This document shows positions 395-56,476 of a stretch of DNA of 64,000 bases, in pieces. Each line of letters opens with the position of its first letter. Positions within the stretch are counted from its first letter, which is position 1. Source of the DNA: Trichoplax adhaerens (Eukaryota > Animalia > Placozoa); contig NW_002060958.1 in assembly GCF_000150275.1 (NCBI RefSeq), positions 690,272 through 754,271 on the forward strand, given 5' to 3'. Made by a program: the position numbers and the translations under genes. The notes under the pieces are model-generated. The model was not told the DNA's origin. It was given only the letters and a program-made list of their open reading frames with translations, and ran no database searches.

Positions 395-502
395 AGTACT
401 GACTGATGTTATTTGGTTAACTAGTACTTTGATATTTGCAGGTGCACAATAAAGGATAAATTATAAATTATAAGGGCTAAAGTGATACTGAAAGGTACTT
501 AC

Positions 503-31300: not shown

Positions 31301-34300
31301 TTACATAAAAACACATTTTCTTATTTTGAGAAGACGCCTTTACAAAGCAAAAATTAATAGAAGCATCTTATTGCTACGATAAAAATAGTTTTAATTACGA
31401 ATTTTCTGAGACATGCGCTAGAATAGCAGTTTAACAAAAAGGATATTATCAAGACTAGAGGATTGCTGTATTAAAAGAAGAATGGATAAAATGGATGTTA
31501 TACTTACTAAAGTATTTGTACGAAAGTAATTAAGGAATTATTGAAAATGTTATAAAGATAAATGAAACTAAGTGACTAATATTTTTTAACAACCTGAAAG
31601 ATGATTTAGGTATCATGTTACACAAAGCTACTTTCAAGCAGATTCATTTCTTCTTAATATTATCTAGTCGGCTTCTTTGTTATAGGATATTTAACAAATT
31701 GTATGCCTTTAGATAATAATTGCAATAGTGTTGGTTTAAGATATGTCGGATTAATGGTAGTAATCAAATTAAATCTGTATTATTTTGTCAAAATAATATC
31801 TTACTGTGACAAAGTGTAGCTCCATAAATTATAAATTAGGCAATAATAATTAATTAACCCGGTTGTTTACCATTTTGGTAGACAACCATGGAGCACTAGT
31901 ACTAGTACTGGTTGTTTACAATTATTATAAATGGAGCAATCAACAAAGATTTAATTATATGTAGCTAGATATAGTATCGTTTAATATAGGATTAGCTTAT
32001 GGGAGCGCACTGCTCCAATAATTAATTACTCATATTGGTGCTGAGGTCAGACTCGCTGATTGGCACCATAATTGGTTGTTTTTCATTAGTGTTTTTTACT
32101 ATCCAAGCTCATACTAAGTCATGTTAATTGTCTGGGAGTAACTCCCTATAGTAACGTATACAATTTGTAGAAGGAGCAATTTACTAGTATGCCCCACAAA
32201 TGAGTGAGGATGGTATAAAAGACCGAGCGAATTGCCATTCGCCGGCAGTAGTCGCTCCGGGCTAGGATAAACTAGTAGAGACTAGAAATCAGATGACTGG
32301 TGAATAAAAAGTGCTAGTGGTGTGAAAGAAACCTGAGTAGTTGTGTGACTGTGAGGAAAGAGTTAGTTTTCCCTTAGAAGAAGACTTCCAAGTTAGTGGA
32401 AGACATACACAATTACTATAGCACCTGACATAACCAAATCACAAGTGGGATTTGTGACAATTACTAAAAGATCAGACGACAATAATATGAACTATATTTA
32501 TCATATCATAAGATTAAATGCTAATAATGATTTCCACTTACAAAGTTTTTAATTCATTCAATTTTTGAAATACAGTTTCATTTATTGAAGTTATCTTGTT
32601 GTACGATAGACTTCTAAAAAGTAAACAGAACATTTTATGACGCAGAAATTTTATCGGATCTTAAATATGAATTTTTAAGATTAGCTAGTGCAGGTATAAT
32701 GTTTTATTCATGTTATAATGACTTACAGAACTGACAAAGTCGTACGAGCATTCATGAAATACGGCTCAGAAAGTAATTCAATATTGTTGTTGGGTAAGTA
32801 CCTTTAAATTTAAGAAAATACATATTCATATCTCTAGACCAAGATAATACATATTGCCATTTTGAATTAGTGTTATATTATAAAATTTAGCCAATTACAA
32901 CATCTACATTGAAAGATAAAGTATTGATTTGTAGTTTGATTATAAGCCAAGATCTGATTATAATGAATGAAGTCTTTCGTCGATATGGTAAATGCAAAGT
33001 AAGTGTAGCATAGTATCCTACGGCTGAATCACATCACTTAAATCTAGAATAACGCCGTTAAAACAGAATTTGTTGTTATTTTAAGTAATTTAATGGTATT
33101 AACTTCAGAACCATAAATTATAAAGAATATTTGTCTCCAGCAATTGCAATTTCTATTAGAGCAGAAACGAAATAATTCCGACAAACATCATTCGTACGAA
33201 CAATTACTAGCTTTTTAGCGTAATTGCTAGCAGATATAGACTCTTACTACTAAAACCTAACCGAAATATTATTCAGAGAAACACTTGGTTATGTATGCAT
33301 AGAATAATCAGTTTAAACAGAGAATGATGTTGAATTTGTAGATATCAACTTAGATATTTTTCAGCACTACAATGCCATACTATCCATATTACCACTCCGG
33401 TAAAATACGAGTTTTAATATTTATCTTCCTAGATTCACTAATTAAAGCAAAGCCTTTAAGTGCATTATCAATTTTATCAATGTTGCAAGAGCAAATAATC
33501 GCTTATTCTAATAAGTTTTAGGTTATATTAATATAACCTATAAGATCTCTAATTACGGGAAGCAACATCATCCTGGCTTAACAGTTCTAAATTTAAAGTA
33601 ATATTTTAATAATTGGTTTGTAATCTTTTCTACATTAAGTGTTTGTAATAGAGTGATTAAAAATCAATGATTACGATGCCTGTCGTTATAAGATAAGTTT
33701 TAAGGTATATCAGACACTGTCTGTTAGGTTTAGAAGATTAAACGCCAGAAAATAAGTAAACATACAAATGCTGCAAGTGAGTCAGATTGGCAAAATCTTC
33801 TGATTGTAAAAATTTGATATTATTTATTCCAAGGTACCTGTATGCAAAAGGAAACAAAATATTATCTATTATCCACCTTTTAGATAAAATACAATATTGA
33901 GTATTTATTCTGGGATACGTTATTTCAGCTCAGTTATTAATGATTTATTGTGATCGAAATATTTCATAATTTCACTAAGTAAAATCTTGGAAAGCGCTTT
34001 CAAAATCTTCCTTATAACTATAACATGGAAATTATGGTACTTTGTTGATAGATACGTAAGTGACAGAGGTACAAGCTTAAAGCCCTAAAACATAGTAAGG
34101 GCAGATCTTTCCTCTGACTTGGGGGAAAAAGGGAAAATACAATAATTAATAATTGATTATGGCATAATAATATATGATGTGCTGCTATCGAAAGATTTTT
34201 CGTCAAACGCTATAATTTTTTCGTAAAATGGAAGTAGAAATATAAAATATTCTCTGTTACATCTAAAGGATATGGTTCTATAATCAATTAGCGACTAATA

Positions 34301-37300
34301 ATTAAGGAGGAATAAACTAACTACGCTAGACGCATTTTTAGAAACTTAAGTGGCACAACTGGTAAAATGAACTCAAGTATTTTTGTTTCGATTATTTTAT
34401 AATTTTTTTAATATTATGTATCATAATTTTAGCTATAAATATGTTATGATTACGAACAGCTGTTGTAGCTTTACTAAAGGCCGTATAAATTTGAGCTCTT
34501 CTAATTGGTTACCGCCCATGTTCCTAGAATTATAAAATTGAAGACACGGTGATGCAATTTTGTCACAGCTCCTCTAAACGATTTGATATGGTCTATGGGC
34601 TATTCTTACTTCTAGTGTGTGATATAAATATGCTTACAAAGATTTCAATTCCACAAGTGAATCTAACGCTTTCTCGTTAATTGATACTAGTCTGTTGTTT
34701 CTGAAAGACCTATTAAAATTGTCAGGTAGCACATTTATGTCTAAGATATCAAAAACATGTTAAAGCCTGCAATCTAAACAACAGTTGTACTTCATATCTC
34801 ATTGTATCAATTTTGCTAGTGCATTTGTAATCTATACGAGTCAACATATTAGGTTTGTACATTTAGTGATTTTCACTATTCAACAGTGCCAATCTATGGA
34901 CACTTTCACATTTAAATTAACTTACAATCTTTTCATGTAGTTTGGATAACGTAATGTTTTAAAAAAATCTTTATCCAACGTTCTGTATCTGTTCCAATCT
35001 AAAAAGCTGGTAAATTTGTTGTTTTTTCAATTTGATATTGTTTTTATCTGATTTTGTGACCAGGTTTTAAATTCCTTTATTGCAAAATACTTACAGTGAT
35101 AATAAGGAGACAGTTTTAGAAAAGTTAAGAACATAGGGTTCTTCCAATGCGTTGTATGATACATTTCTAATACCATTAATGAATGTAAGCTTAATTAAAT
35201 TCAAAGTACTATATTAATATAACTTATCTATATAATAATTTTAATAATATGCTATTTTTGAAATAATCAAATATAATATCATGTGCTTCAACCAGTTCCA
35301 ATATTCGACGAATGAATATCTACTATCAGGCTTGCTCATGTAGTGGGATATAAAATAGCAAGGTATATAAACCAATGACTAGTAAACTTACAACATAGAG
35401 CAGTCATAAAAGTTTAAATCAGTTTGTGTTCGTATAAGATTGCTAGATAAATCGCTAAAGGAAATTATATAAAATAAATTTAGTGTTAGATTTTCAGTAA
35501 ACCTAACACAATTAATTCCTCAAGCTAGAAGTGTCCATGCACTGTAGTTCCAGTTTTATTTTGCATTGGGCAGAGATTAATAGCCAAGCTAATCATTTCT
35601 TAATGTTCAGAATTAGAATAAATAAAAAAGAGCTTACATCTTATCAATCTTCTGGGATCCTGAGATAAAGTTTTTGCCACCAAGTCGATGTATGTTGGTC
35701 TTCGACAAGCCCCTGTTGAAATTGAAATTATTATTGATAACATCAAGCAGCAGTCATGTCGATTAAGTATGGAATCCTAAATTCTAGCTTAAGTTCTTAA
35801 TTCACAGTTTTTAAAGTTAAATGATGCGTATAAAAATCTAATTTATTCGTTATAGTCAGACAATAAAATAGTATGCAAATATCACAAACCAGCTTCGTGG
35901 CAAGGATAACGTAAAACAAATCTCTAAATTACTATAGTCTTCCGGGATTCAGTATCCCTTAACTACCTCACAAGAATTTAGACGCCTTTGATTCTACGTT
36001 AAACTCAGCTAGACAATTGAGAACTGCTTTATTTAACTATCTGACGGGCTTATATACCCTTCTACAGCAGCTAACATTCACAAGTCATCTTATAAAAATA
36101 CTTAGGTGAGAACATCTACTAACTAGTTTTTCACAGTCGGACTACAATATATCCATTCACAGAATCATTTCAGTACACATTACAGCACAGCATTAAATTT
36201 ACTGTAACACATTTATAATTAGAGTAATTCCTATTGTAAGTAACTAGTTGTAATATAATATCACTATATTATATTAACCAAATTTAGATAGCTATATCTT
36301 CACGGTAGTTCGTACCGTGACACCAAAAAATAAAAGTTATAGTTCTAATTAATGATGGAGTTTATGGCCTTAGTACATTTAAGAAAGGTAAAGCAGCATA
36401 TTATATTTCCAATAGCAACTTAGACAGTAGTGTAAGGCACATTTTAATCCTACTTCCATAATAGAAAAATTTCGCAAACTTAATATATTATAGCAGGGTG
36501 CTCGACTGGTATAAATAAAGATTATCAGTCTTAATTAAGTTTATTCATTAGACTACAGTTAGAAATGTATTTGAATTTTCTATTGAGTATATTAATGCTA
36601 GATTTATTCGCTAAATTACGTATTGGTCATTTTTACTAAGATACATAAATCACAGCATTTTAATCGAATTTTTCAGAAAATTTATACGCGATGACACACA
36701 TATTTTCTAATGGAATCTTGATTATTTTTGATTCATTGTAGCTACGCTTATCAGCATGAAGGATAATGCAAAAAACATATTTATATGCTCGTCTGTTTAG
36801 CTTAAATATTGATAGAATATAGTATTAAAATGTAACTAAGCATTGCTGTGATAGCTGATGAATCGGGAACAACACGATAACTGGAAGAAAAGGGCCATTT
36901 AAAAGTGTGTATTTCTATCCCCCTTAAATACTATCAGTAAGGCGTAAAGACCTTCTAGTTTATATTCGCCTCTAAATAGAGTATAAAGATATAAATCTAC
37001 AAGATAGTATAATGAACATTATTTTAGAATTCTTCTTCAAGGTGTTTTATTATTTTAATAAGTATTCTAGCTTTAAAAATAACTTAATTTGGCTTAATTA
37101 CAGTAGGTTTTACCCTAGCATTATAACAAATAATAATCGCGACTCCTTTATTCGGGTTAGAACTTAAGCATATTCTTTAGAACAATTTTGATCAGAATAT
37201 CACGATTTCAGATTGTAATTCATGCAATATATTTAGTCAGTATCGTACAAATTCTCTAATTATGATAAAAACTTTCAGCCAATTTTGATTAGAAAATATA

Positions 37301-40300
37301 GTAGAATTAATATTCGTTATTCAATACAAGGTTAACCCAAATTTTTCAATCTGGGTCCCAATTTAAGATTGTTAGTCTGTCTTAGTTTTTTGCTATAGTT
37401 ACATATTGTATATTATGAGAGACAGATCTCTCTACCGTAGAAAAGTACAATTCATGGACTTAGTAATATTGGGAATCTAGGATACAATTTATCCGATCAT
37501 ATGTGTTTAATTTCTAGTTTTATTAGGAATACATTAGAATAGCAATTTGATAGTCTGATACCGCCAACTACTCTGCGTAGCATGTAAGAGGTGATGTAGT
37601 TAAGTAGAAAAGTAGTTCAAGTCTTAGTTCAAAATACTAAGTTTAGATTAGGATTTACTTGAATTCGTGAGTAAATCGTATTTTAATTGGTATTCAGATT
37701 AGTTGAGGCAATAATTCTGCCATTATTGTAATTTTTATAAGTTTTTTGCTAAATTGTAAATAAACTGGTGCTATAGTGTTGAAATTCAATAGTTATCCGT
37801 TCTACTTAAACTTTTACGTCCTTTATTTTTATAAAATTATGGCCTTATGAACATTTTACTTTGCTATCCTTTGTGATTTAACAAAATTTAAGATTAGAAG
37901 GTTACAAAGAGTATGGATGCCAATCAATATTTGCTGATATCACTTACAAATTTTTTAAGCTCCTATTTTCAGGAAAGCGTAAGCCAAGAAAATTTGATAA
38001 AGAATTTCCATCTAAGTATCTATTAAACATGATTAAACTTTATAAATATCTATTGCTCAATTTTAAAAAATGTTCATTTTAATATCGTAACTTTATATGA
38101 TATCGAGATAAATGGACTCGATTAAGTTTTATGGTGGCATGTACACGATAGCAGTTTATTGCTATTAATTACATATAATTAGTCAATGGCTAAAGTTACT
38201 TCATTTAATCAGATACAAATTTTGCTTCGCTAGATATAGATCCACATTAGCTTGCAATTATACTTAAAGCGTTGATTTAATTTGTTATATAAGATATTTT
38301 CGTTTATTATTCTGGCTTAAAGATATCTCTGATCATCGTATCTTTAGACATATTACAAGATTTTAAATTAGCGGGAAAAATTAAGTCTATATACTCTAAA
38401 CTATTAATTCAGCTTCAGTTACTAAGATTTATGGTTACAGTTTTTAATAAAGTGTTACAGCTAATGTTGAAATTTTTATGATGTATTTCTAAACATAACA
38501 GCCTATAGCAATAATTGCGCTTATTTAAATCATAAAGTTTTGGTAAAACATTTTATAGACGAATACTCACAGTTGTTCGATTGATTTAAGATCATGAAAA
38601 GCGTTTATATCGACAGAATTGATCAAATTAGTTTTTAGTGACCTAGAAGATTTGTGTTAAAGCAGTTCATTCATAATTGATTATTATTGATATGTCTTGC
38701 AATGTATTCGTCATAAACAATTTGGTGCTCATTATTTTTGATTTCTAAAAGAAAAAATCTTATATCACTAGAAAATTGCTTCAAAATATAAAAGATAAGT
38801 AAACTCGTGAAATCCGTTTGAAGTTAGTAAAAGTACCACATTTTTTAATTGCAGCAACACTTAGTATAAAAATATCTATAGCACCTACATAATGAATTTG
38901 AACTACTACTACATGTTGCCATCGCTCTGAAAGCATTTTAGTACGAAGTAAGAATCAGTGACTACAGTAATGCTAATAGCAAATTAGAGTATTATGTAAT
39001 AGTCGTTGCATATATCATGTGATATAGTTTGAATTAATGGTAATCTCAGTTTTCAATAGGAATTTACAAAGACTGTATGCAAAAATAATATTGGATCAGT
39101 TTTTTCGTAACTATCGATGATTGTACAATATTCTTTTTATAAATTTATTTAAATAGTAAAACACTCTGCTTTAGTCTTTCTATACGATACCGTATACCGC
39201 ACCAATTACTAAATTATGACAATAATTAGAAAATTTGGGAAAGAAATTTGCAAACGAGGCATATTTACTATTGGTCTTTAATTGTTCAAACAGAATGAAA
39301 TGCTTTTAAATTGTATTACTTACAAAAATTTTAGATTCATTAATTTGCTTTGATTCCCAAATTCAACTTTTCGAATTCTGTTTTCACTTAATGTTCTGAT
39401 ATTTCAGAAAAATAGTAATAATTAAAAATACAGTCAATGACCTATCGCACTGCTATTTGAGATATTGTACCACTTGTAACTATCTTTCAGTACCTAATTA
39501 GAGCGATATCTTATGACTATTATGAGCAATATAGAAATAATTCAGTTTCGGTATAAACCTCATAAGCTTAACTGTTGCTTTGATTCTAACTTTAATCTTA
39601 GATGCTCAAAATAACAGTTAAATGTTCTTCACTTTAAATTTAGTAGACCCTCAAAAGCTAATGAGGTATCGCTTAGTGTTCTCACCTGATTAAATTAAAA
39701 TGTAAGAAAATAAACGTATTAACAGCGGTTGCTGTCTTTCTATTCTAATTTGTTTAGTTAAGGTTACTGACTTCCTTAAATGACCTAGAATTGAGCCACT
39801 ACCTTTTATTTGCTACTTATACTAGTTATTGCAACACATTTACATTCGTGCTTGTTACCGATTAGAGTACAATTAATTTAACAAACTATTCTTCATTGAC
39901 AAGTACTTCTACCGCAGAGCTATAGATTACTCGTAATAATCAGGAAACGAATTTTGGTGATGATTTGCTATTACTGGTTTAGTTTAATCTTTATTATAAG
40001 AATATCTGTTTCAGTGTTTTGTTCGAATTGATTTCTATATTTATTACTGTTCCCACAAGTAAGATGTACGCTTTCCTGTCTAATACAATGCGATCTTAAT
40101 ACTGAACACATTTTCATGATAACTATGCATCCTCGGAATATTTCTAATTCTTTTCAAGCACCTGGTAACTAGTATATTCTGCTAAATGAAATTTTAAGAC
40201 GCGCTATTTACGGAATATCAGCATTTATTTGTTTTTCTCTGGTTAGATAAGATAACTGTGCTTATTGTATTTCATTGATTCTGTGTAATGTACTGTAGAT

Positions 40301-43300
40301 TTATTGAAGCGACTACTGTGGGTTTTGTCTTGAGTATGAAGTTTGCAGCATGTGTTTCTCGTTTTCGCTAGCTTAATGAAGTCACGTCAATTAATTACTA
40401 GGGTGTTATGGTATTAACTTGACGTTACGACAGTTTAATAGTAAAGTAAAAGCTAATATGAAAAATATCCATATTTGTAGTGCTACGTAAGATAAGTAAA
40501 TGCCCTAAGCTAACGTGGATATTATTTGCGATAGTTTATTACATATTTTATATTAATTTTTATTATGTGCAGTTAGTAGGAAGATAATTTAAGTTCTAAC
40601 TAATGATAGTCTAATTAAATAACTGTTACGGAGCTTGTTCCATGTGTTTTATGATAATTGGGAATAATATTGACCTCTTACAATATAGCCGGACTATTAC
40701 TATGCTTAGCAAAAGACGTAAAGTGCTTATTGCTATATCGATAATTAGAGCACGTATAATAAATACCAAGATGAGGGAAGCCAATTATTTATCGATGCCA
40801 CCTTGGAGAGGTAATACGTAGCTGAGGTAATACGTAGCTGATGTGATAATTAAGATTACGCAATAAGCTATACTAATGTAAAATAGCACCTAAATAGGCT
40901 ATAAATATTAATGTTGTAAGATTTATAAAGTTACAATAATTATATTATATCGGGGAAAAAATAAGTCCTAGCACCAGCAATGACAGTGTACAGTCATAGA
41001 ACTATATATAAACAGAAATATTTGAGTTAAGTTGTGTGGTGAAAAGTTGTACATATGTCCACTCTAACAAAATTTCTAGCTTTATAGTACTTTGCTGTGT
41101 GCATTTAATGTTTAAGTCAGTAGTTACTTTCACTGTATGTTTCCTTATTGAAGAGTATAAGTGGTGACATTTAGGGTTATTCAAGGTCTATTTATTTAAT
41201 ATTTTCAGAGCAATGCATTTCGTACTATATTTTATCCTGTAACTTTTCCTCTGAATATTACAAATCACGATTTGTGGCGACAACCTGGCATAAAACATGA
41301 ATTTTGGTATACTCACTAGTTCTTAATGCAATCATGTTTATTACCACTTAAAAGGTAATGAATTCGATATGTATCTTCTTTGATAAGTACCTCTAAAGCT
41401 TAACTATAGATTATCTATTACCTAGCGTGAAAATTAAATTTCGATGCACTCACTAGTTCTCAAATAAATACGATTAATATTGTTCTCATCGTTTTCTACA
41501 TGGAATTATTATGGTTTGATGAATATAAAGGTTAATTAATTTCAAGCTTATATAACTTTGATGTAATCCAATATTTAACCTTATTTCGTGTGGTGTTCTA
41601 AAGTACTACACGTATCTTACTTTGTAAAACGTCTCCTTTAACTCTGCTTGAAATTTATAAAATAATGCTTTTGAAGCTACTATAGTTTTACTTTAGTCTA
41701 CTGCAAACTGATGTTTGCAACTTGGATCACCTTCAAGCTATTTAAAGGTTTACCCTTATACTTATATATTAATAGCAACTGTTACAAGCTGACTAGCAGT
41801 ATACTATAATCATAATCATCATAATATGTTTAAATACTACTATTACATACGTACAAAGTTTGTAGGGAAGTTATATTAAAAAAGGGTGCCAGTTCAGAAA
41901 TCATGTTATCTGTTAAGTTCCTATTTAAAGTGTATAGATGTATTTAATCCTTTTGACCTTTGACAAATGTAAAATAGGAATCTTAAATAATCATTTAAAA
42001 TAAAATTAGAAATTTTCTTTATCAATGAAAATTTAATTTTTAATAGTGAATCAATAATACTCACAGGATTAAAAGTTTGGAATAGCTTATCCAAACGCAT
42101 TAATTAGACTAAGAAATAGGTATACTAAATGAAAAGCATATATTTTGATCTTACAAAATCTGTAGCGAATGCTGGTGCTTGAATGCAGTAGCAGAAATGT
42201 TGTTGATGTTATTTGAGTCCAAATTTCTGATTTTCCAGCAATTAAACATAAATAAATGTCAGTTACGTGGCTATTATCAAGTATTCTTTCTTATTTATTA
42301 ATGAAATCCCTTTATTTAGGAATGTGATAATAAAATATGTAGCTCGCTTACGTTGGGGTTTAAATTTTTAGTATTGCACTGACTAATTATTTAATTACTG
42401 TCATACTAACAAAATTTGCAGTTTCGTTAAATTCTGAAAATCTTCAGCATTGATATTAGTGAGCTCATTCAGGTCCAAGTTTCTATGCAAGTTGCAAATA
42501 AAAATATTAACTGTAAGGTATTTGATAATTGTAAGAATATGAAAGACAGTAAAATAAATAAGCGCATATTCCGAACACTGCATATAAAAAACAAACATCC
42601 CATTACATTACCTAGTGTGGAATCTATCAGAGAATTGAATTACTCTATTCCTATACTCGCAATACTAACGCATTCTAACTATTACTTTACTAATAATAAT
42701 TTAATAAAAATAGTACACGTTTATTTTTTACTACATATCTTATCGTAAATATTTTTCATTTTTTATTTTTTACTAATCATTTCACTGTATGCGATACGTT
42801 ATCGCGTATTATATTCTAGAGGTTATATGTTGTTTTCTGGTTGTTTGTAAAGTTTTGATTCATGTAATTTCTGTAATATTCTATATCATTCTCTGCCAAA
42901 TATTAATTACTGACTCAAGTTTCCTCAATACATAATTTTAACGTATCCGAAACCTATATAAAGAACTGTATTCGGCCATATACATTAATTTAGCTTATGC
43001 TAGAATCTATATCTATTATTCTAGGTATACAGCTATACAGTATCATTTAGGTTTATATTAGAATATCTTGATCTAGACTGACGTTATATAGTAATGTTTA
43101 ACTTTTGGATAAATCCTAATACCGTTTATGTACGTTATTTCAAAAACAACTTTAAATTTACTTAACTCGCTATACATTTGGCCCAGATTGATGTCGATTT
43201 CTTTAATAATCAGCATAATTTAAGATATCGATCGATAGAAACAAGCCTGGACCTACTGTATATACTTAATTGCAAGCGCTTCTAGCAGTATTTGAACTGA

Positions 43301-46300
43301 ATAATTAAACAACAGCTGTAACATAAGTTAGATTTGCGGTTATTAACTACAGCAGTCTTTAAAATTTTTAAGCTGCCAGATAATACAAAAAATAACGCTT
43401 TAAAAAAATGATTAATTTCTTGGATCGATGGGAATCATGCCTTTAGAACTTACAACTGAGTTAATTTCTGTAGGCATGCTAACGATGAATTTGAAACTTC
43501 CTGAATTGAATTCTGAGTTAATTTTCTGAAAAATTTAAGTAAATTCAATAGTAATATGACAGACTTTATCTTTCTATGTACGAAAAGAGTATTCATGACA
43601 TTTACTTTTAAGCTAAATTTGTCTATTTTGCTATTTTACGCGATGATTAGAAAAGCCGAGTAGTAAAAATTCTAAGTTAAAAATCGATACTTTTAAGCCA
43701 TTACTATTATCGGAAGCGACTAATAAATTAATCTTACCACCTTCGTTCAATATGAAAATAAATATATTATCATGCTGCACTTACAGTATTTTCAAATTTT
43801 TTACTCCGCAGAAAGAATTTGGTAATATTGCCGAGATATTGTTGTAGCTGAGATCACTGTGAAAGTATGCAACCAAATTATATCAGAAATACCATTATTG
43901 TTAGTTCAATATCTGTATCACTATTTTCCTGCCATCGAAAAGGGAGATATTTATTACTTTTTATTATAGCTCACATCAGAACAGAGACTAAATTAAATTA
44001 TGAGGAGTTTCATAATAAATGAATGAATGTTTTACATAGCTTATACGAAGTTTGCGTAATCATATTTAGCAGGATGATTTTCTTAGAACTATCGTTGAAA
44101 ATGTTTGTTTAACATATTTTAGTATTGAATTGCAGATTATGAGCTGTGTTTAATAGGACATGATGCAGAATAGCGTAATTTAATGGACTCATCATATGGC
44201 ATATGTAATAGCTCACAACCATAGACTGTAATTAAAGATTCTATATTATAGTACCGATTATCATATACAGAAAAGTGTTGAGTCGGTATTGATGGTAGAA
44301 GTAAAAGCAGACATGTAATTCATATATTAAGGTACGGATAGTTCATCCTATTTTGTGTTAGAAATCTAGTAGGTCCAGTACCAGAGAAAAAAACGTTCTT
44401 ATTCACTATTCAACATCTACTTATATAGCGATAAAATTCGTAAGTTGCGCCAGGGTTTATAGGTGACGCATGCAATACGAGCAAACATCATAAGATCGTA
44501 GCGCAATACCTTAACAGTGCATTTTTTACCCATGTACATAATGTAATCTTAACATATGGCGAATTCGAAAAGAAAACTACATAAATACTTTAGCTATTAC
44601 TGTAATAAATTGTGAAAGATCTGCAGTAGTAAAAGTTGCTAATTACTACCTAAATAAGTGTAAAATAAGGCAGAGTCTTGCCATTATAATTCTTGCTGTA
44701 TTAGAGACTAAAAGTATATAAGCAGGCAACTTTGTGTTATTTAGCCATTCTTTTTTATAAATCTTTCTAGAAGCTTTTCTAATAGTTTTATCCGACTGAA
44801 GTAGAGCTATGAGCAGGTTGCCTTTAGCTGTATAACCATTTAAACTATTCTAATTTTCTACAAATTTTGGAACTATGCGATCGTTTAAATAGTAGTTTGT
44901 GGAAATTTTTGTATTTTCTTCATTGTCTGAAAATGCAAATGAACAACCCATGGAAGACTATTGTTTAAATTAATTGCTACATATCGTCATAAATTGCAAG
45001 AAAATGCATCGACAATATTCAATTTGTATTTAATGCTAAGATTTCAACATAATTCTTTGGATTGTCAAACTAAGGCTTTTGCATAAAATCAGCCTTTGAT
45101 TCTTTGCTTAAAAGTAATTGTAAAGATTTCAACTAATAGTACTAGTAGTATATGGCTAATAGGGTGAAATGGCGCTTTTGTATTGTTTCTAGTACGTAAC
45201 TGTGGTTAATATGATACTGCAGGGTGGTAATAGTTTACTTACAGATTTCTTAGAGAGCTTAAACAAGCGAAGCTGCCTTGTTCTATTGTATCAAGTCTGT
45301 TGCCTTGCATTATCCTAGTTGATGAATGTTTCATTACGGTTCAAGACCAAACTCAAACTGATGTTATCTATAGAAATTACTTTTACTAAATCTGTACTTA
45401 CAGTGTCTGTAATCTTCTGGTGTCGCAAAATACCTTTGGTTCTATTCTCTTAATATTATTACCAGCCAATTGCCTTAATATATTTGACAAGATAACGCTT
45501 TCAGTATTGAAAATACGTTAGCTTTAGTCCTATTGCAAATATTCTGAAGAATTGATTACTAAATTTTGGAATTTAATGTTCTTATACAGTAACAAAGACT
45601 AAAACGCTTTATCAAATTATTGTTAGCATTTGCTGCTAATAGGCTACTGTCACAAAACAGCTTTGCAACAAAATGAAGTAATTTACGATCAATAAGTCAA
45701 TTCCTTGAACCACGTATCAAGGAACGATATCTGCACTTTCAGTAACACTTTTACTCTACTAGCAGACTACAAAAAGACTTAGACGCCTCGTATTTTACGT
45801 TAAATACTTAGTTTTAGAATTAACTTTATGATACGATATACTGCATTTATATACTCTCCTCAATAGTTCCTGAGTCGTAGTTAGTACGATTAACTTTGGA
45901 ATCATTCACTAAATTAGGCATTAATTTTAGCTACTGCTCTCTAATGCATACAACAGTATTTACGAACATAGACATGTGATGATTAGCACAGAATAGTCAG
46001 ATTAAAGATTCATTTCTACCTTATTCTCTCTACAGAGCTAGCTTGTAATAATATTTTTACGGTATCAAAAATGCTTTCTTATATAATTAAATACTTTTAA
46101 AAATAATTGAATTAATCAAGCAGCCATTAGTAGTCTGTCAGAATATTTGACTTATAAATGCAAATGCACTAGATATATTGTACTTAATGCGGACTTCATG
46201 ACTTCTTATGCTACATAGTGAAATAAACTGCTTAGATCAATTATGAACTGAAAATGTATCGTAACTAATAGTCCTTGACGGTACTCACTTATTTCATTTT

Positions 46301-49300
46301 CTAGTTTATGAAACAGTTAGGACTTACAAATTTCTTAAGTTCCACAGGCAAGCAAATGAACTTTCGTTAATAACTGGCAATCTATTTGATTTTAGGATTC
46401 TAGCAATTTATATATATAACTGCAAGATTAGTCTTTTTAAAGACATGCAGTGATAGTAACTATTATTTGTAATATGCAGCATGGAGGAAAACTTTAAAAC
46501 GCCATTTATTTTAAAACTGCAAGTAGTCAAAATTGTAACCATAAGAGTTTTAGCAATGATACTTTTCGCAGAAATTTTCACTTAGGTAGAATTCAGCCGG
46601 GCAGTCTAAATAACGATAGCAACTGCTAGACACTTTTTTTAATAATAAATGCCTCGATAGCAAACTCACAGCGTAACCAGAATTGGCATACCACAAAACG
46701 AACGTTCCGGAATGCTTTCAAGCCTATTTTCCGACAAATCTCTGTAATTAAAGTATTTTAGAGTTTCGATTACGGATAGAATTGTGTGTCACGATTATTT
46801 AAATTCTCATTAAATGTGAAGAGCGCTACTGCTAGAAATACAAAGTACAGGGCTTAACTACTATCACAAAATAAACTTTAGAATGGAAAATAAGATGTGA
46901 TTATATACCGTTGTAATAACAGTTACAGTAAGCGCATTAAATATTACTTTATTATAGTTTTATGATAGTGAATTATATTCTCCTGCATGAATATTATAGT
47001 GCCATATAGTTTATTACGAATTTATTAATAGGACAAGCGTATATGGATAAGTCCGTTAGCTGTGCAAGCTCACATTTTCTGTACTAGATTCCGATCCAGT
47101 AAGGACATATTGGTCTAATTAGATTACTGGCTTACTCTGATATTTGTTACTTAACCATACCGGCAACGAAAATTCTGTTTTAATGTGTGTTTTATATTTA
47201 GTAAAAGAACTTTGAAGTCAGTAGATTCTTATGGACTTTTACTTCATTTTTATTTGTCATGCAGCTAATTTATGACACATGCGCGTATGTAAAAAAGCAG
47301 GTAAGTATTAGTATATACTGCTTAGGAATCAAATTTCGAATAAAATTCTTTTATCCTAGAAGTTAGTATAAGTTATTAAAGTGATTTTGCTATCGCAAAA
47401 TTCGCTATGTGGTATAAATTAGGCAGTTTAGGCCACAAATTTAGTTACGCTAATAATTCGATAAATTTAAATAAAAAATGGTGTAGTGTGTACTACTGGA
47501 CAAAAAATGTTTGCAACAGGTTGTTATGACCGAGTAATAGTCTCCTGTTACTACTATTAGCTTCCCTACTGTACTACTACAATTAGCTGCAATCATCTCA
47601 AAGGTGGATAAGTTATTTTATTAAGTTAATTTGCTCCATAAGCGAAAGCAGGGCACGGTAATTTTAGATAGGAACTTACAAATAGGAAAGTCGACTCAGG
47701 CAGAAGAAAGCACCAGCTGGGATTGATGTTAATGGATTTCGCCTTAAAAAGCTGTAAAATAAAAGAGGTAGTTAAATGAATTACTTGCTATACAATGATA
47801 TATCATGGCGCAATATAAGTATTATATACGTTATTAACAATATTATAATCTATGGAAAGGAATTTCGATCCATTAACTTAAGGCATTTGCTATTCTAAAA
47901 TATAATTCAATCTATAAATCTTACATTTGCCGTAGATATCTTGTTCCACAAAAAGCATTGGGCTGAATTTGAGTAATGTCATTACTGCTGAAACTTCTGC
48001 AATCATATTTTATCGAAAATATTATTTGCAACAACGCCTAAGTATTCAATGGAAATACTGTAGACGCAATTTCTGAAACACAAAATTACTGTTTAACATT
48101 AATAAAGATTCGCTAGTTTAGGATCGATTAAAACAAGCCATTATCGCTGTCGTTAACATTCGATTCGCCTGTAACCGGCATTATAACTTTAATTAGATGA
48201 AATATTCTGTACCATTTGAAGTAAAGCGTTCATAGGACTTTGTTACATTAAACAATAACTATCATCGTTTTCCGTAGGATAATTGGACTTGTGTCACTGG
48301 TTGAAAACATTAAGTTAAAGCTTCAACCGATCTCATTATAGGATTATGTATTGTAATGTGATAAAGTGCTTCTCAAAAATAAGATAAGATCTACAGTTTT
48401 TCGTAAATTTTCTTGTATATTTGTCTTACTACTACCTGGGTCTTCTCTTAGACTAATTGTGGATTATATTTGGATTATCTCTTATACAATCTTACAATCT
48501 TAAATGCAATATATCTATTTTCGTATAATCTGCAATCTAACTATCTAAGTCTTAGATATATTTGAGACTGTACTACATCTAAATATCGCCTATACTTCAG
48601 TCCAGAAAATTTATTCACATTTTAAAATGTAAATAAGTGTTACGAGCTAGGAATAGCCCTATCTAGCAACAAGAATTGAGAGAGCGATCTCTATCCTTTA
48701 CTACTGTTATTTGGAATACCAGACAATTGGTATTGTAAGGCAGATAGGGTTAACATAGAGAGACTTTCAAGTCTACTAGAAAATCACAATCTAATTTACT
48801 GTCGACGGACTCTCTATTTATATAGGTTTCGGACCTAAAACCAGTTTAGCTACGCAAGTCACCCCCGTCTATTAGAAATTAACCAAATTAATACCCTAAA
48901 TGGATTCTATCTGTACAGATTAGATACAGTCTAATCCTTTTAAATTTACTATAACAGTATTAAAATAAGCAATACTTGTTAATAGTTTAACAGATACACA
49001 TAACACTATCCTACTAAGAAATTTCCTCTGAACTTAGGAATTGTACTTTGAACCTTAACAACCTTGGAGGTGATAGGTATAATCCAGTTTAGCTAGTTGA
49101 AAATTATTATTTTAGTCGATGTAATCCTAAATTAAGGATATGAAGTGCTAACCACTAAAATTACAATTAGGAAGACCGTAAAACATTTTTGAGATATGAG
49201 CATTTATAGAACGTAACATAGAAATAAAGTATACGTTACAAAGATTACTTTCCTGACAATTAGTTATAAATTGTTGTCCACTATTATTACTCTTATGTTT

Positions 49301-52300
49301 ATCAAGTAGGATAATTTTGACTCTTTAGTAGATGAAACCGCTGCAACGCCTCTAATTTAGATCAAATTATCGTATTATAAACTATTAATTTTATATATTT
49401 AAGTCTATTTCACTACCGTATTCAAAAAATAACTATCTAATTTAGAAGCAGCATANATAATATACTTTGTGAAGGCTACTATCGAGGATGNNNNNNNNNN
49501 NNNNNNNNNNNNNNNNNNNNNNNNNNNNNNNNNNNNNNNNNNNNNNNNNNNNNNNNNNNNNNNNNNNNNNNNNNNNNNNNNNNNNNNNNNNCCAAAATTC
49601 GATTCAATATCCAGCAAAGTAACCCCAACCTCATAATAACGGCAAATTAAGATTGTTTTGACTACAATATTATCACAATATTTAAATAACGTCCCTAGCA
49701 AATAGCTGTCCTTAAACTTGTCATACGTAAATGGAAGTGTAAAACTTATAAGAGTAAGTCATTGTAACGATTTTCATTTCTCACTACAGAAAAATTATTC
49801 CGTCATCAAATTAGTGATTACTGCTAGTATTAAATAGATATTTTGCATAGTATCACATTGTCATGGTACGAACTACCGTGAAGAAATAGCTATCTAAATT
49901 TGGTTAATATAATATAGTGATAATATATTACAACTAGTTACTTACAAAAGGAATTACTCTAATTATAAATGTGTTACAGTAAATTTAATGCTGTGCTGTA
50001 ATGTGCTCTGAAATTATTCTGTGAATGGATATATTGTAATCCGACTGTGAAAAACTAGTTAGGAGATGTTCTCAACTAAGTATTTTTATAAGAGGACTCG
50101 TGAATGTTAGCTGCTGTAGAAGGGTATATAAGCCCGTTCGATAATTGAATAAAGTAGTTCTCAATTGTCTAGTTGAGTTTAACGTAGAATCAAAGGCGTC
50201 TAAATTCTTGTGAGTAGGAATACTGAATCCGCAGATTTTAAGAGTTTTAGAGATTTGTTTTACGTTATCCTTGTCACGAAGCTGGTTTGTGGCATACATA
50301 AACCAGACTAATACAACTAAAAATACTGGAATTTAAACTCATTAATTAATTGCACTTGTAACATAAAAGCATAAATATCTTTGAACGAGTAACTTAAATC
50401 TAGCCTAATCCGATATAATAGTTGGATATTGACTGGATGAAAAAAAAGTTATTTTAAATTTTATTCTTGGTAATACATTTCATTAAACCATTCTTTATAG
50501 AATACCACTAAATTTTTTTATCTTTATTCAATAATGCTAGTACTGTGATCTGAAGCTAATTAAATCTTTACGAAAATTATCGATTTCTACACATCTGCTT
50601 TAGTGAAGTTGTATCGGCAAACTTACAATACACGAAGATTCTTAAGACATCCCAGCTGACCTACATGAATCATTTTAAGAAAATTTCCATACCCATTTCT
50701 AAAAGGAATGCGTGAAGTAAATTTAGCTTCTTCTAAATGATTCAAATATCATCATATAGATTCTAAATTGTATAGACAAGATAATAGATAAAGAATATTA
50801 TTGCAGTAAGTTAATATAACAATACATCGTTTGCAGATTCCATAATTTGCAAAGCGAGTTCTTTTCTATCGACGATATTTTATTAAAACCAAAATGCCTG
50901 ATGTAATAAAATAATTTTTAATAACAGTTCAGATATAAGTAGTTCACGAGTTGCACACAATACAATTTAGAATAATTTCTTAAGGTAATGTCGAAATTTA
51001 TTTAATTTTACTATCAATCACTCTAATACATGTGAAATTACAAAATAAAACATGAAGTAATAGCTTTCATGTTATAAACGATTTTTAAATAAGGAATAAA
51101 CTTACAATGTCTTAATTTTTAAGACTCGATTGAATGTGTTCATAGTAATGTTGGATAACGAGTTTCGATAAAGATTTCTGTATTTTTTATTGAAATCGTA
51201 ATAAAACAAATTAAATGATAAGACTATCTGCTACAATACGCCACAAACATCAATATTGTTAGATATGAAATTTCATTTGTTGCTCTTAAATTACACGCTA
51301 AAAATGTCTACACTAAGAGCAACTTTGATACGAAACATAAATACAATAGTAAAGCTATCATTTTCTTACAGATTTGAAAGTCTTGACAAGCCTCTAAATG
51401 CATTAGGCTCAATATGGCTAATCCGATTATCGCTCAATACTCTATGAAATATCGTAATATTTGAATATATTCAGAATATTTTAAGAATAACATGACTATT
51501 ATTCTATCAACAGAACCAGTAGATTTGTTTTGTAATTACCAAAAACAGCTTCGCAACAAAACGAAGTAATTTACAATCAATAAGTCAATTCCTTGAACCA
51601 CGTATCAAGGAACGATATCTGCACTTTCAGTAACACTTTTACTCTACTAGCAGACTACATAAAGACTTAGACGCCTCTTATTTTACGTTAAACACTTAGT
51701 TTGAGAATTAACTTTATGATACGATATACTGCATTTATATACTCTTCCTCAATAGTTCATGTGTCGTAGTTAGTACGATTAACTTTAGAATCATTCCCTA
51801 AATTAGGCATTAATTTTAGCTACTGCTCTCTAATGCATACAACAGTATTTACGAACATAGACATCTGATGATTAACACAGAATAGTCAGATTACGATATG
51901 TCCTATCACGGAATATTTCCACGATAATTTACAATCTACCTTAAGTAAGTTACAATTATAGTGATTCGAACTGTAAGTAGATAATTCGCATTCCGCAAAG
52001 TAACTATTAATTTCAGTATATATATATATATATATATATATGTCACAGTCATAAAAACCAGAGCTGAATTAAAACACAGTATATTCAAATTAGAATTTAA
52101 CTAAATAAGGATAGGCTAACAAAATTATCCTAACACAGATATTTATACTCTAATACAGTATATAACACTGCCACAGTAATTAATTGAATCTCTGATTGTA
52201 CTGGCACTTTATTATCATAGCCTACATAAATTTTAAATTGCCATTCTAAAACGGTATAATATTATTGTGCTAGATATTGCTTTATTGCATTTACAAGCAT

Positions 52301-55300
52301 ACAGTCTTAAGTCTTTATCTAAAATCATTTTTAGGAATGGTTATCATAAATATAATGTATATCTTATGGAAATACGCGTATTCAAAATAGAATGTACATC
52401 CAAATAAAATTTAAAAATTTAATTTTAATGATCATATACTGTAGCAATAATATATGGTATAAGCAACGTAGTTTAAGAGTTATATATCGTAGTTTAGTTT
52501 TTGTAATATATATTGAAAATTATCTATCGAAATATAAAGCGCCGTACCAAGCATCCTAGAGTAGTGTACTACATTGTTTACAGGACTGAACTAGAGTAAT
52601 AACCAATTATCCCATACGTTTCTATAGGAGGTGTTTAATATTATATTATATTTTGTATTTACTACGTTATATCCCTTTCTGAATGATACATGAGCAGACA
52701 TAGAATAAATTTTTATCTAAACTTTTCTTAACATTTATTCAGATTTGCCCTTTATCAAATTCAGTTTTATATTCTGCACTGTTTTAATTTATGTCGAAGA
52801 AGTTGTGTAGCTCTGTCGCTTACAACGTAGCTATTAGTTTAAATAGAAACGCATTCTATTAACTTTACGGTTTAGTGTAGTGATAGATTAAGCAACTGTA
52901 TGTAGTTCGTGAAACTTAAGTGGATTCTGTAATTACTAATTATTTTACTGCTAAGTCTATATACCATGTTTATAATCAAATTTATTATTTTAAATTATTT
53001 GAAAGACGTGACTTACAGATAAATGAGCATCCTTAAGCAGTAAAACATATATTCGTGTATGCTGTGGAGCGAATTGTTATCTAATAGTCTGAAAATAATC
53101 AAATTTTACGTTTATAGCATAATGATGAAAGTGTGTTCAGATTAGTAAATTTTCTTCCCATACAAACTGAACAATGATGGAAGATGGCATAAAGCATTTG
53201 CTTCAATGGTCCTTATCAAGTTACCCTTTAGCGAACTATGAATGTAAAAATTTTATAACTTCTTCAACAATGGCTAAATGAAGCGATCAAACAGTGACTA
53301 AATACTTTTCGTAGTATTTGTAGCCATAATCCACACAGTAACATTCTACCTGTTTTACACACATTCAGACTATACTTCAGACCATTTACAATCTATTACG
53401 GTAACTACTACAGTACTGACATAGACATTTTATCTTCTACGCAAAGTACGATGAACTAGTCATATCCTTATCCTAATACCCATATGAGTTTCATATTTAT
53501 TTTATTCGTAGTATCAATAGTTACTCAATACTCTACTGTATATTTATCTGTATTTTAACTTAGAATCTTTAATTACGATCAACAGTTACAAGCTGTTAAA
53601 ATAAAGCTTATGATAAACATAGAAAGCTACAATACCGTAAATCAAAATAAACAAGGCAAATAAGCTATAATGAAATACCGGTACTTATATGCGTTACAAA
53701 CATTTTTCACTAAACAGTAACTTCGGACTATTTAATAGTTTTTCTAAAGCCTTTCAAGTATTTATATTCGGCTAGATTAGAGCTATCTTTAGGTTATTTT
53801 TAAATAATGATTTCAAAGGTTCTAATTTTTTGCGAATTTTGGAATTTCGTGATCAGATATGTCGTAAACATTGTCAAATTCTTTTATAATGTAGAAAAGT
53901 TATTAAAAGTTTTGCGTGTATTTTACGCATTGAAATTTTCTTACAGAGTTCGAAGGTTTCTAAGGCATGCGAAATCGTTTTTCTTTATAATATTTAATCG
54001 ATTTTTATCTAAATAGCTAATGATAAATGCTATAATCAATAATTATACAAGATTAATTACATAAAATTCAACTAATTTTCATATTATTTAGTTAAATCTT
54101 TTAGCGAATAGCATCCAAAAAAAGCTAATACTTACAGATATCTCAGAGAAGGTAAAGTACAAAACGCCATCGGAGTAATACTTGAAATTTTATCATTCAT
54201 CAGCTTTCTGTAATTAAAAGTATAGCATTATTTAAGATAATTTCTAATTGAATAAATAACTTTAATGTTTGATAGCGTAGCAATTTAGTGTTAACTGTGT
54301 GCAGGAAGTAAATTGGAAAACATTACTTACTGCAGTAATAAAGTGCAATACATGCAAGTTCGGAGTACGAGGTAAAGGTAGCTTAAAGGATTTTAGGTAA
54401 TACTAATAATGACTTAATAAAGACTACGTAATAGCTTTTTCAGTTGATTACAAAAGGAGGAAATATATTTATTGAGTAATCTGTGCCTTAATTTGAAATC
54501 TATAGCAAGATCTTTTAAATTTCAATCGAATTTAAATTGGTAAGTACGGGATTCTAAACTTTAGGATAACGTTAAGGCTTGAATACAAAATTAGTGTTAC
54601 TTTTCAATTTTTGTGCAATTGAAGCTATCTTGCAAATTTGAGCCCTAAAAAGTTGTACATCATCTGCTAATAGTATTTTTTCATGGTTTCCTTATTTAAT
54701 GTTAATGAAAATATTGACGTTAATCATTTTAAAAATTTAAGTATAGCGTGATAAAGCGAAGCGAAATTGGTTTAGAGCGTTCAATTGTGCTTAAGTTTTA
54801 CTTACAAAGTTACGAGCTTCGGATATCTAGTAATCGTCCCGTTTGAAATTGTCATAATATTACCGAATTTAATATCCCTAGAAGATTATGAAGTAAAATT
54901 CAGTAACTATTAAGTTAATTGACACAGGCGCTACAATTTACGAAAACTTGAATGAATAACTATAGTAGAGATAATCGCCGTATTTTAAAATGGAGGAAAG
55001 TCTAGAGTTCTACTTCTACTAGAGCTAGTGCCAATAAAAATAGACTAGGAGAATATTCATATCTAATTGCTAAAGTATTCGAGGCATGATTTCTGTCACT
55101 CTCAAGGTTCGAAATCTACTAGCTGGAAATTTGCGTCATTAATACAGTGAAAATATCTTATAAATCGCAAGTACCTTAACAACACCCTTAACTGTATACT
55201 TCATTTTATTATCGCTAGCTGTTTGTATGATTTGGGCGTTTTACTAAATCATGTAAAAAGTTAACGAACTTAAATTGGGTAATTGTGTCGTATAATGTAG

Positions 55301-56476
55301 CCTTCCTAGGTATTTCTACGATATTACTTTATATATAAAATTCTCAGGTATTTAGCAAATGGATATTTTTCGTTATAAGGATTTGTAAAGGAAGTTTTGG
55401 GCGTAACAGATACTGTGAAAATCTTATTTCTCAAACAATGCTATGCTTTGTTCTATCCATAAGCTCACTAAATCGAAGGTTCAGACTAAACACGGAAGAC
55501 TACATCTTTGGCTAATAATTTCTTAGCCTGTTGAATGATATATGTTCGATTTACATTATTATAATTACTTTCTAACGTTGCATTTAGTGATGTTACAAGA
55601 GCTAACTAAATAGCTGCAATTTTTACCATCATACTTTGAAAATATGCAGCTACCATTAGCTGATAGTACTGCACTCCGTAGATATTACATAGATTTACTA
55701 TAACCTCCAGCATAACTTATTTACATTATCAAAAACAAACATTTTGACTGATAGTTTTTAATTAATTTTATCTCACTTCATAATGATAAAGTATTTTATT
55801 GAATAGTATATTGATTATTATACCAATTAATTTTAAATGCAGAACGTATCGTTTTCGCTTAATTATATATGAGAGCATTTATTAAATGTTACAATTTTTT
55901 TGTAAAAGCTAGCCTACATTGAAGTGATATCCCTCGTTGCGTTGGCTAAATCAGGAATTTGAGTCAGATCGTAACTACGACAAAAAATTGTACTAGTACT
56001 GCAAGAACAGTATTTCGCACATGGATAAGCCATTCCTTTATTCATCGAACAAATTATTCGTTAATATGTTGGTACACATTTTATAAAACGCTGGTAATGT
56101 GCTGAAGAATTTAGAAGATTTATATACTCTTCATATAGCTTACTGTATATTTATTTACGTAGAAGTTAGTGTTTATTCTAGCTAGTTGTAATCACGAATA
56201 AATAGCAGTTTGGTCACATATTATTATTGGTGCTAATTTATGTTTCTTAAATGAGTACTCTTCTATCTTCTGTAAAGTATACTCATTATTAAGCAAGCAC
56301 TCTGATAAAATAATACTGATTTGATACCAGCAATTTTAACCAAATTTAAAATATCTTGTCATATCAAACTGCTGATAATATCTGCATGACCAATTTACTT
56401 TCTCACCTGTTGATGCAGCTATAAGAATCCATAGTATCAAAGCAGCTAAGATATTCTTTTGGCATCCAAAGTACAT
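24228..56476 (-). CDS. Giant LRR-containing rhodopsin-family GPCR (LGR-like, RXFP/GRL101-type hinge, no LDLa); 48 exons, 45 LRRs, ~1506 aa
   Basis: Exons in transcription order, all GT-AG and in frame. Signal 56407-56476 (MYFGCQKNILAALILWILIAASTG). LRRNT 55918-56035 (CAKYCSCSTSTIFCRSYDLTQIP). LRR exons: 54806-54877, 54136-54207, 53945-54016, 53164-53235, 53017-53088, 51370-51441, 51106-51177, 50826-50897, 50627-50698, 47925-47996, 47680-47751, 46670-46741, 46328-46399, 45402-45473, 45243-45314, 43785-43856, 43454-43525, 42411-42482, 42155-42226, 41855-41920, 39324-39395, 38571-38642, 37948-38019, 35638-35712, 35392-35454, 35095-35166, 34926-35006, 34638-34709, 34458-34523, 33766-33837, 32727-32801, 32542-32613, 30682-30750, 30474-30536, 30295-30357, 28894-28965, 28714-28797, 28539-28598, 27778-27858, 26781-26852, 26550-26627, 26306-26377, 26019-26093, 25816-25887, 25582-25653. 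Hinge+7TM 24228-25329. Each LRR exon is 60-84 nt (mostly 72), phase 2-2, and reads roughly xLxxNxIxxI...F..L..L..L. Caveat: assembly gap at 49491-49591. Confidence 0.85.
29349..29964. mobile_element. Family R6 solo-LTR-like element (intronic)
   Basis: TGTTAC...GTGACA with a perfect CTCTT duplication; the same start (tgttacggagcttg) recurs at 40624. Confidence 0.75.
31805..32459. mobile_element. Solo-LTR-like element, GC-richer than its flanks
   Basis: TGTGAC...GTGACA, flanks CTTAC/ATTAC (4/5 match); single copy in the window. Confidence 0.6.
33430..33501 (-). pseudogene. Decayed LRR exon with a dead donor
   Basis: 72 nt, AG acceptor, donor GGAAGA (from GTAAGA); with one frameshift it reads ICSCNIDKIDNALKGFALISE. 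Confidence 0.5.
35880..36322 (+). mobile_element. Family R3 (short form) solo-LTR-like element
   Basis: TATCAC...GTGACA, flanks GCAAA/CCAAA; near-identical inverted copy at 49859-50294. Confidence 0.8.
38357..38421 (-). pseudogene. Decayed LRR exon
   Basis: AG/GT flanks kept, 65 nt; reads N*S*INSLEYIDLIFPANLKS(L). Confidence 0.55.
39629..39691 (-). pseudogene. Decayed LRR exon
   Basis: Reads NQVRTLSDTSLAFEGLLNLK* with stops on both sides and no phase-2 acceptor. Confidence 0.55.
40404..40990. mobile_element. Partial R5 copy followed by an R6-like element starting at 40624 (possibly nested)
   Basis: 40404-40620 resembles 9550-9760; 40624 starts like 29349. Right end not resolved. Confidence 0.5.
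44600..44882 (+). repeat. Degraded 3' fragment of R1
   Basis: gtgtaaaataagg, gcaactttg and aaattttggaactatgcgatcg match the R1 3' half. Confidence 0.5.
45648..46005. mobile_element. Truncated R2 copy
   Basis: Nearly identical to 51540-51893; begins TGTCACAAAACAGCTT. Confidence 0.75.
48638..49200. mobile_element. Family R4 repeat, LTR-like start
   Basis: Starts TGTTAC; diverged colinear copy at about 63322-63890 (aatagcccta, gtactttgaacctta, aattaaggat). No target-site duplication resolved. Confidence 0.55.
49491..49591. other. Assembly gap
   Basis: Run of 101 N, plus a single N at 49456, inside an intron of the LRR-GPCR. Confidence 0.99.
49859..50294 (-). mobile_element. Family R3 (short form), inverted copy
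   Basis: TGTCAT...GTGGCA, flanks CACAT/TACAT; reverse complement of 35880-36322. Confidence 0.8.
51537..52175. mobile_element. Family R2 solo-LTR-like element
   Basis: Perfect GTAAT flanking duplication, ends CCACA; contains a (TA)n tract. Confidence 0.75.
52017..52040. repeat. (TA)12 microsatellite
   Basis: Read directly from the sequence. Confidence 0.95.
53385..53863. repeat. Rearranged old R1 fragments (inverted 5' half, then forward 3' end)
   Basis: caaagtacgatgaac matches 146-160; ttggaatttcgtgatcagatat matches 4781-4802. Confidence 0.55.
55918..56476 (-). CDS. Signal-peptide exon (56407-56476) and LRRNT exon (55918-56035) of the LRR-GPCR
   Basis: ATG at 56476, hydrophobic core LAALILWILIAA, phase-1 donor gtgaga. 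The next 118-nt exon carries a CxxxCxCxxxxxxC cap and a phase-2 donor. Confidence 0.85.

Follow-up and report, generated by a model that had tools for sequence, protein, structure and literature searches.

Why do cysteines recur in two alternating forms on neighbouring repeats of a very long leucine-rich repeat (LRR) receptor? The question is raised by a 64,000-nt stretch of the Trichoplax adhaerens genome (contig NW_002060958.1, positions 690,272–754,271; hereafter the window). The minus strand of the window, with about 30% G+C, carries a eukaryotic gene. Based on its sequence, this gene codes for a GPCR (receptor coupled to G proteins) of the LGR type (LRR-containing GPCR), and the region 43454–54207 encodes repeats 2–17 of its extracellular LRR solenoid. 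The original prediction, made from the DNA letters alone, described this region as a series of two-exon building blocks, each duplicated as a unit and clamped by a disulfide bond. Here, the reading preferred for the cysteines is that those of each pair form a disulfide bond between two successive coils. This is the best explanation of the sequence comparisons below, with a probability of about 0.68.

The array of A and B exons

The LRR exons were located by scanning the minus strand for exons bordered by AG and GT. Sixteen of them lie within 43454–54207 (Table 1). Each measures 72 nt, is free of stop codons between its AG/GT borders, and is flanked by introns of phase 2. Fourteen of the sixteen form seven pairs, each composed of type A followed by type B, and all the cysteine motifs listed originally are correct. 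Type A (n = 7) contains Phe/Leu-Cys, with the cysteine at residue 16 of the exon. Type B (n = 7) contains Phe/Leu-x-Cys-Leu, with the cysteine at residue 17. The exons are ordered as A B A B, two Cys-free repeats, and then five times A B. The exon at 50897–50826, whose presence was predicted from an unpaired B exon, is real and belongs to type A, and the repeats at 51441–51370 and 51177–51106 both lack cysteine, as had been noticed. The 18 repeats after the first one (LRR1) correspond to nine two-repeat units, seven of which have a cysteine pair. In A, the cysteine occupies LRR position 20 and directly follows the Phe of the Phe spine. In B, it occupies LRR position 21, 25 residues past the A cysteine, while the distance from B to the next A is 23 residues.

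The exon encoding the seven-transmembrane (7TM) domain of the gene yields 76 genomic matches at E ≤ 1e-20. The comparisons below include this gene and its five closest paralogs (Pa–Pe), whose 7TM domains are 56–61% identical and whose upstream exons were typed by the same scan. Pb is the tandem neighbour of this gene.

A and B are distinct from each other also outside their cysteines. When the Cys columns are masked, a leave-one-out profile assigns 65 of the 72 exons to the correct type; with shuffled labels, the mean is 34.6 and the maximum is 48. At residue 7, Ile is favoured in type A and Leu in type B. Type A further prefers Glu-Pro at residues 11–12, and type B prefers Gly at residue 4. 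The Cys-free units within the zone still score as A-like and then B-like. In the maximum likelihood trees of the exons without the Cys codons, the A/B labels require 10 changes, while shuffled labels require about 24 (minimum 17 in 500 shuffles). A single A clade is not rejected by the approximately unbiased test (p = 0.25 for DNA and 0.40 for protein). The two clean clades that had been expected were not obtained from the 66 informative bases, but A and B are not interleaved to an extent that contradicts separate types. The existence of two separate types hints at the pair as the original unit of duplication. What stands of the two-repeat module as first proposed is the difference between A and B beyond the cysteines.

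The introns of the region follow the pairs as well. The introns within the pairs are short (119, 75, 127, 173, 270, 87, and 259 nt), and those after the Cys pairs are long (709, 1575, 2630, 938, 854, 1386, and 971 nt), in agreement with the original prediction. The exception is the intron after the Cys-free pair, which is only 208 nt long. Across the six genes, the median length is 142 nt for the A-to-B introns versus 448 nt for the introns after B (Mann–Whitney p = 1e-6). The asymmetry is also seen without this gene (p = 1e-4), with exceptions in both directions. It is a tendency in the paralogs, not a rule.

Similar stretches in two of the long introns were considered as relics of pair duplication, and this was rejected; they are copies of a dispersed 351-nt repeat. 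The repeat has 40 scored matches out of 642 candidates genome-wide, mostly about 90% identical, and it is probably a non-autonomous mobile element. Part of the difference in intron length is therefore mobile DNA and not the history of the exon pairs.

The 2630-nt intron contains an assembly gap at a distance of 1035 nt from one flanking exon and 1494 nt from the other. Since the gap is more than 1 kb away from either exon, no reading frame is touched. Besides, this gene, Pb, Pc, and Pe have exactly 18 repeats each between LRR1 and a landmark exon of 66 nt, which makes the loss of an exon pair unlikely. Judging from these counts, an exon pair is unlikely to be hidden in the gap.

Coupling of the cysteines and the proposed disulfide bond

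In all six genes, the A/B repeats are confined to the first 18–20 repeats, and the order is always A then B. With nn for a unit free of both cysteines, this gene and its neighbour Pb share the layout AB AB nn AB AB AB AB AB nn. The layout is AB AB nn AB AB AB nn AB nn in Pc and (A?/AB) (AB/nB) nn AB nn AB AB nn nn in Pa and Pe, and Pd is a ten-unit variant. Two B exons that seem to be missing in the paralogs coincide with assembly gaps, and Pd has a truncated B exon at a gap edge. In a tree of the units, those at equal positions in different genes fall together (positions 2, 3, 6, 8, and 9), which indicates that the nine-unit array predates the duplications of the six paralogs.

The two cysteines of a unit are kept or lost together. 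All 14 cysteines of this gene are kept in its neighbour, while the other repeat positions are 40% identical. The six genes have 53 in-register units: both cysteines are present in 34, neither in 17, and only one in two (Fisher p = 1e-11, with shared ancestry ignored). A register moved by one exon gives no positive association (odds ratio 0.24). At position 8, three genes have AB, whereas two have clearly similar units without both cysteines. The same double difference between genes is seen at positions 5 and 7. Such paired loss provides a clean natural test of disulfide co-evolution. All the intact runs of cysteines start with A and end with B, and lone AB units are found between Cys-free units. 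Because every run has A first and B last, only the pairing of A(i) with B(i+1) leaves no free thiol. As for the disulfide clamp proposed for each pair, the presence of the two cysteines is coupled in the six paralogs, whereas the bond itself, as well as its stiffening role, is what we infer.

The fold of the repeats can be seen in the AlphaFold2 model of P0151, the database protein of the neighbour, which includes three intact AB units. The model is a regular LRR horseshoe with a predicted local distance difference test score (pLDDT) of 87–95 over the A/B repeats, and its best structural matches are TLR3, TLR13, and SHOC2. In the first A repeat, a short helical turn stops just before the cysteine, which places this cysteine on the convex or descending side, opposite the concave strand. 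It can be proposed that each A cysteine bonds to the B cysteine of the next coil on this convex or descending flank. The bond would staple the two coils into a rigid double coil, and the long ectodomain would carry seven such staples. If this is true, the periodic array of seven staples is a new way of stiffening a very long solenoid, and the staples help to explain how placozoan receptors can have 40 or more repeats.

Several observations weigh against this stapling. When only well-supported branches are counted, the coupling is represented by three independent contrasts, two concordant and one with a single change, so a test corrected for ancestry is without power. Two paralogs have an orphan cysteine. 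In pair 2 of Pe, the A partner is changed from TGT to AGT (Ser) (loci L045–L047), and in pair 3 of Pd, the B partner is TAT (Tyr) (loci L041–L044). Both partners are one base away from TGT, in otherwise intact paralogs. Unless they are sequence errors, unpaired cysteines are thus tolerated at least transiently; the orphans could be transitional states, tolerated free thiols, or base-call errors. The positional homology among the deeper paralogs rests mainly on their equal repeat counts, and the identity of units at the same position barely exceeds that of a shifted control. Precedents for single bonds of the A-B geometry were not found in the literature searched.

Three other readings of the array have to be weighed. 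It is conceivable, yet unlikely, that the cysteines are passengers of an ancient duplication of two repeats, a super-repeat of 48 residues. The alternation would then reflect ancestry, with no bonds or only some of them formed. The many differences between A and B besides the cysteines fit this view, as do the greater age of the nine-unit array than of the six paralogs and the apparent tolerance of two orphan cysteines, and a formal test would require more independent contrasts. On the other hand, passengers are not expected to survive 14 of 14 between paralogs that have diverged so far at the other repeat positions. Nor are they expected to vanish in twos at several unit positions while no coupling extends across units. 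Fourteen free thiols on an extracellular domain would also be unusual. Alternatively, the cysteines might have other bonding partners: A(i+1) for B(i), a distant coil, a second receptor molecule, or a ligand. The long runs do contain B followed by A 23 residues on, but the scheme of B with the next A would leave two free thiols in each run, isolated AB units exist, and the B-A register is uncoupled, as described above. Such bonding is highly improbable.

The original prediction also connected the pairs with splicing. The exon pairs could be cassettes that are spliced in or out two at a time and generate isoforms of different lengths, with the short inner intron keeping the pair together. With every LRR exon symmetric (phase 2-2, 72 nt), any skip preserves the frame, and the inner introns are shorter than the outer ones in all six genes. 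However, the database models of the neighbour omit single B exons and not pairs, although these omissions are possibly prediction errors, and the length of two of the long introns is accounted for in part by the 351-nt copies. Pairwise splicing is very unlikely. The two ideas can be combined: the seven A-B units might be both disulfide-stapled double coils and splice cassettes, included or skipped whole. If this were true, a single gene would produce a series of receptors with ectodomains of graded length, all of them with intact disulfides. The chance of this combination is very small. Stapling of each A cysteine to the B cysteine of the next coil, independent of splicing, remains the reading preferred here.

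Comparison with known LRR proteins and receptors

LRR solenoids are normally held by their end caps. To our knowledge, disulfide bonds between inner LRR coils occur only as single cases. TLR4 (Cys281–Cys306) and LGR5 (Cys348–Cys373) each have what we take to be a single disulfide bond between adjacent LRRs, with a spacing of 25 residues. The context in TLR4, Leu-Cys and then Phe-x-Cys-Leu, presumably represents the A-then-B geometry. Neither the bonds nor this context was confirmed in the literature searched, which was consulted for LGR4 as well. If they are correct, TLR4 and LGR5 have one bond per protein, in contrast to the periodic array here. A disulfide ladder in LRRs also found no confirmation in the literature searched. 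A Listeria internalin is known to have a cysteine in each of its LRRs, and the titles of two papers link a "cysteine ladder" to Listeria virulence factors or InlJ. The InlJ ladder is reportedly of another kind: its cysteine takes the place of the conserved Asn within the coil, without forming disulfide bonds.

Alternation of repeats is seen in other LRR proteins. Ribonuclease inhibitor has two alternating LRR types, and the two-repeat unit is regarded as the module of its duplication. Its repeats are 28 or 29 residues long, the protein is intracellular with free cysteines, and one exon encodes one A+B unit. Unlike ribonuclease inhibitor, the protein here is extracellular and each repeat has its own exon. 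Periodicity beyond the single repeat is documented in LRR proteins (PMC1899181). An example is STT, a three-repeat unit without cysteines, in TLR7–9 and small proteoglycans. The unit here differs from STT in consisting of two repeats and containing cysteines.

The receptor shares several characteristics with type C LGRs (the RXFP/GRL101 type, with RXFP1/RXFP2), namely a 7TM domain closest to that of RXFP1 and a short hinge with few cysteines. It is unlike type C LGRs in the ectodomain, where the N-terminal LDLa domain is lacking and about 41 repeats (about 41 exons) are present, compared with about 10 in those receptors (about 7–10 LRRs characterize the type). A regular-expression scan of all six frames of the window revealed no LDLa-like Cys pattern. 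In the Drosophila type C LGR "relaxin receptor 2" (P0144), a single A-then-B pair is present at matching repeat positions and with equal spacing, versus the seven pairs here. The repeats of human RXFP1 that are aligned to the fly A-B pair have no cysteine. Among 150 representative 7TM relatives, several A/B repeats are seen only in the models of the neighbour, and most of the other models of the family are partial. The placozoan array may be a multiplied form of a motif that is single in related receptors.

In T. adhaerens, 46 LGRs have been described; 41 of them are specific to placozoans and have an unusually high number of LRRs and a hinge of their own (Hauser, Koch and Grimmelikhuijzen 2022, PMC9545775). 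The present gene corresponds to this description of a placozoan-specific family with a non-A/non-B hinge in its identity to TRIADDRAFT_60578 and its high number of repeats. The passages on cysteines and disulfides in that paper treat the caps and hinges, and the A/B array is not among the subjects of these passages. The gene family is thus known, while the cysteine array appears to be undescribed in the literature searched. Its significance lies in structure and evolution, and nothing follows from it about a ligand or a physiological role.

Gene structure, annotation and neighbouring loci

The protein is predicted to start with a signal peptide and an LRRNT cap, to continue with about 41 LRRs and a short hinge, and to end in an RXFP1-like 7TM domain. 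Around 40 short LRR exons are chained from 54877 down to 25582 on the minus strand, with 72 nt as the commonest length. The typical LRR exon is composed of one base, 23 codons, and two bases (1 + 69 + 2 nt), which means that the introns on both sides are of phase 2. When 40 of the LRR exons are joined in silico, they give 965 codons in a constant phase without a stop. The exon for the signal peptide joins the LRRNT exon directly. The assignment to LGRs is based on the presence, in the same gene, of a rhodopsin-type 7TM domain and a long LRR ectodomain with a signal peptide and LRRNT. Over profile positions 1–260 of 260, the 7TM exon matches Pfam 7tm_1 (E = 7e-34). Among solved structures, RXFP1 is its best relative (E = 7e-34, versus 1e-28 for TSHR) and ranks ahead of the glycoprotein-hormone receptors. 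The hinge is short and has a Cys-Cys ... Cys pattern.

In its 7TM exon, the gene shows 100% identity with TRIADDRAFT_60578 of T. adhaerens. This public model has 505 amino acids and includes only the last few LRRs and the 7TM domain, which are spliced together. It skips the exon at 25887–25816, and the signal peptide, the LRRNT, roughly 35 LRR exons, and the whole A/B array are absent from it. A search of the protein collection for longer models or orthologs from sister strains yielded four placozoan matches, none of which contains this gene's array. In this receptor family, most of the ectodomain is absent from the public annotation.

Table 1. Features of the receptor gene and its introns (positions in the window)
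Feature	Position	Strand	Basis or remark
Exon 1, start codon and hydrophobic signal-peptide-like segment, 70 nt	56407–56476	-	read from sequence; 23 codons + 1 base; GT donor at 56406
Exon 2, LRRNT cap with four Cys (C-x3-C-x-C-x6-C), 118 nt	55918–56035	-	AG acceptor, GT donor; frame joins exon 1 and LRR1
LRR1 exon, no Cys	54806–54877	-	counterpart heads four of the five paralogs
A1 exon (AFCT)	54136–54207	-	exon scan, motif check
B1 exon (FACL), preceding intron 119 nt	53945–54016	-	exon scan, motif check
A2 exon (ALCH)	53164–53235	-	exon scan, motif check
B2 exon (FYCL), preceding intron 75 nt	53017–53088	-	exon scan, motif check
Dispersed 351-nt repeat, copy 2, in the long intron between B2 and pair 3	51542–51893	+	96–97% identical to copy 1
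Cys-free repeat, pair position 3, A-like	51370–51441	-	masked profile
Cys-free repeat, pair position 3, weakly B-like	51106–51177	-	masked profile
A3 exon (SLCK)	50826–50897	-	exon scan
B3 exon (LGCL)	50627–50698	-	exon scan
Assembly gap (run of N), in the intron between B3 and A4	49491–49591		extra single N at 49456
A4 exon (AFCG)	47925–47996	-	exon scan
B4 exon (FFCL)	47680–47751	-	exon scan
A5 exon (SFCG)	46670–46741	-	exon scan
B5 exon (FACL)	46328–46399	-	exon scan
Dispersed 351-nt repeat, copy 1, in the long intron between B5 and A6	45654–46004	+	sequence match
A6 exon (VFCD)	45402–45473	-	exon scan
B6 exon (FACL)	45243–45314	-	exon scan
A7 exon (SFCG)	43785–43856	-	exon scan
B7 exon (LACL), final Cys-bearing repeat of the zone	43454–43525	-	exon scan
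About 24 further one-repeat LRR exons, 63–81 nt, phase 2-2, without the A/B cysteines	25582–42482	-	exon scan
Last exon, short Cys hinge and rhodopsin-type 7TM domain with DRY and NPxxY motifs	24228–25329	-	Pfam 7tm_1, RXFP1 match

Cysteine pairs of another kind are found on adjacent repeats closer to the hinge, on the minus strand. One is composed of the exons 30295–30357 and 28894–28965 (residues 12 and 14), and the other of the exons 26019–26093 and 25816–25887 (residues 11 and 14). Both pairs have counterparts in most of the five paralogs. They may represent further disulfide bonds between coils.

The neighbour Pb is the tandem paralog TRIADDRAFT_60575, which starts at 6420 on the minus strand; it occupies 161–6420 of the window and extends below the window start. 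It begins with LRR1, AB, AB, a Cys-poor pair, and AB, in the same layout as this gene. Its public models from two strains (P0151 and P0002) both omit the same two B exons, which is either a prediction error or real skipping of single exons. Pa and Pe follow each other head to tail, separated by about 24 kb, on the contig that also carries this gene (C1399, 1162874–1228000). Together with this gene and its neighbour, they indicate that at least two tandem pairs of receptors with A/B repeats exist on a single scaffold. On the plus strand, open frames at 18454–20507, located between the two receptor genes of the window, contain a kringle domain (Pfam E = 1e-19) and match SRCR weakly; they belong to an unrelated gene.

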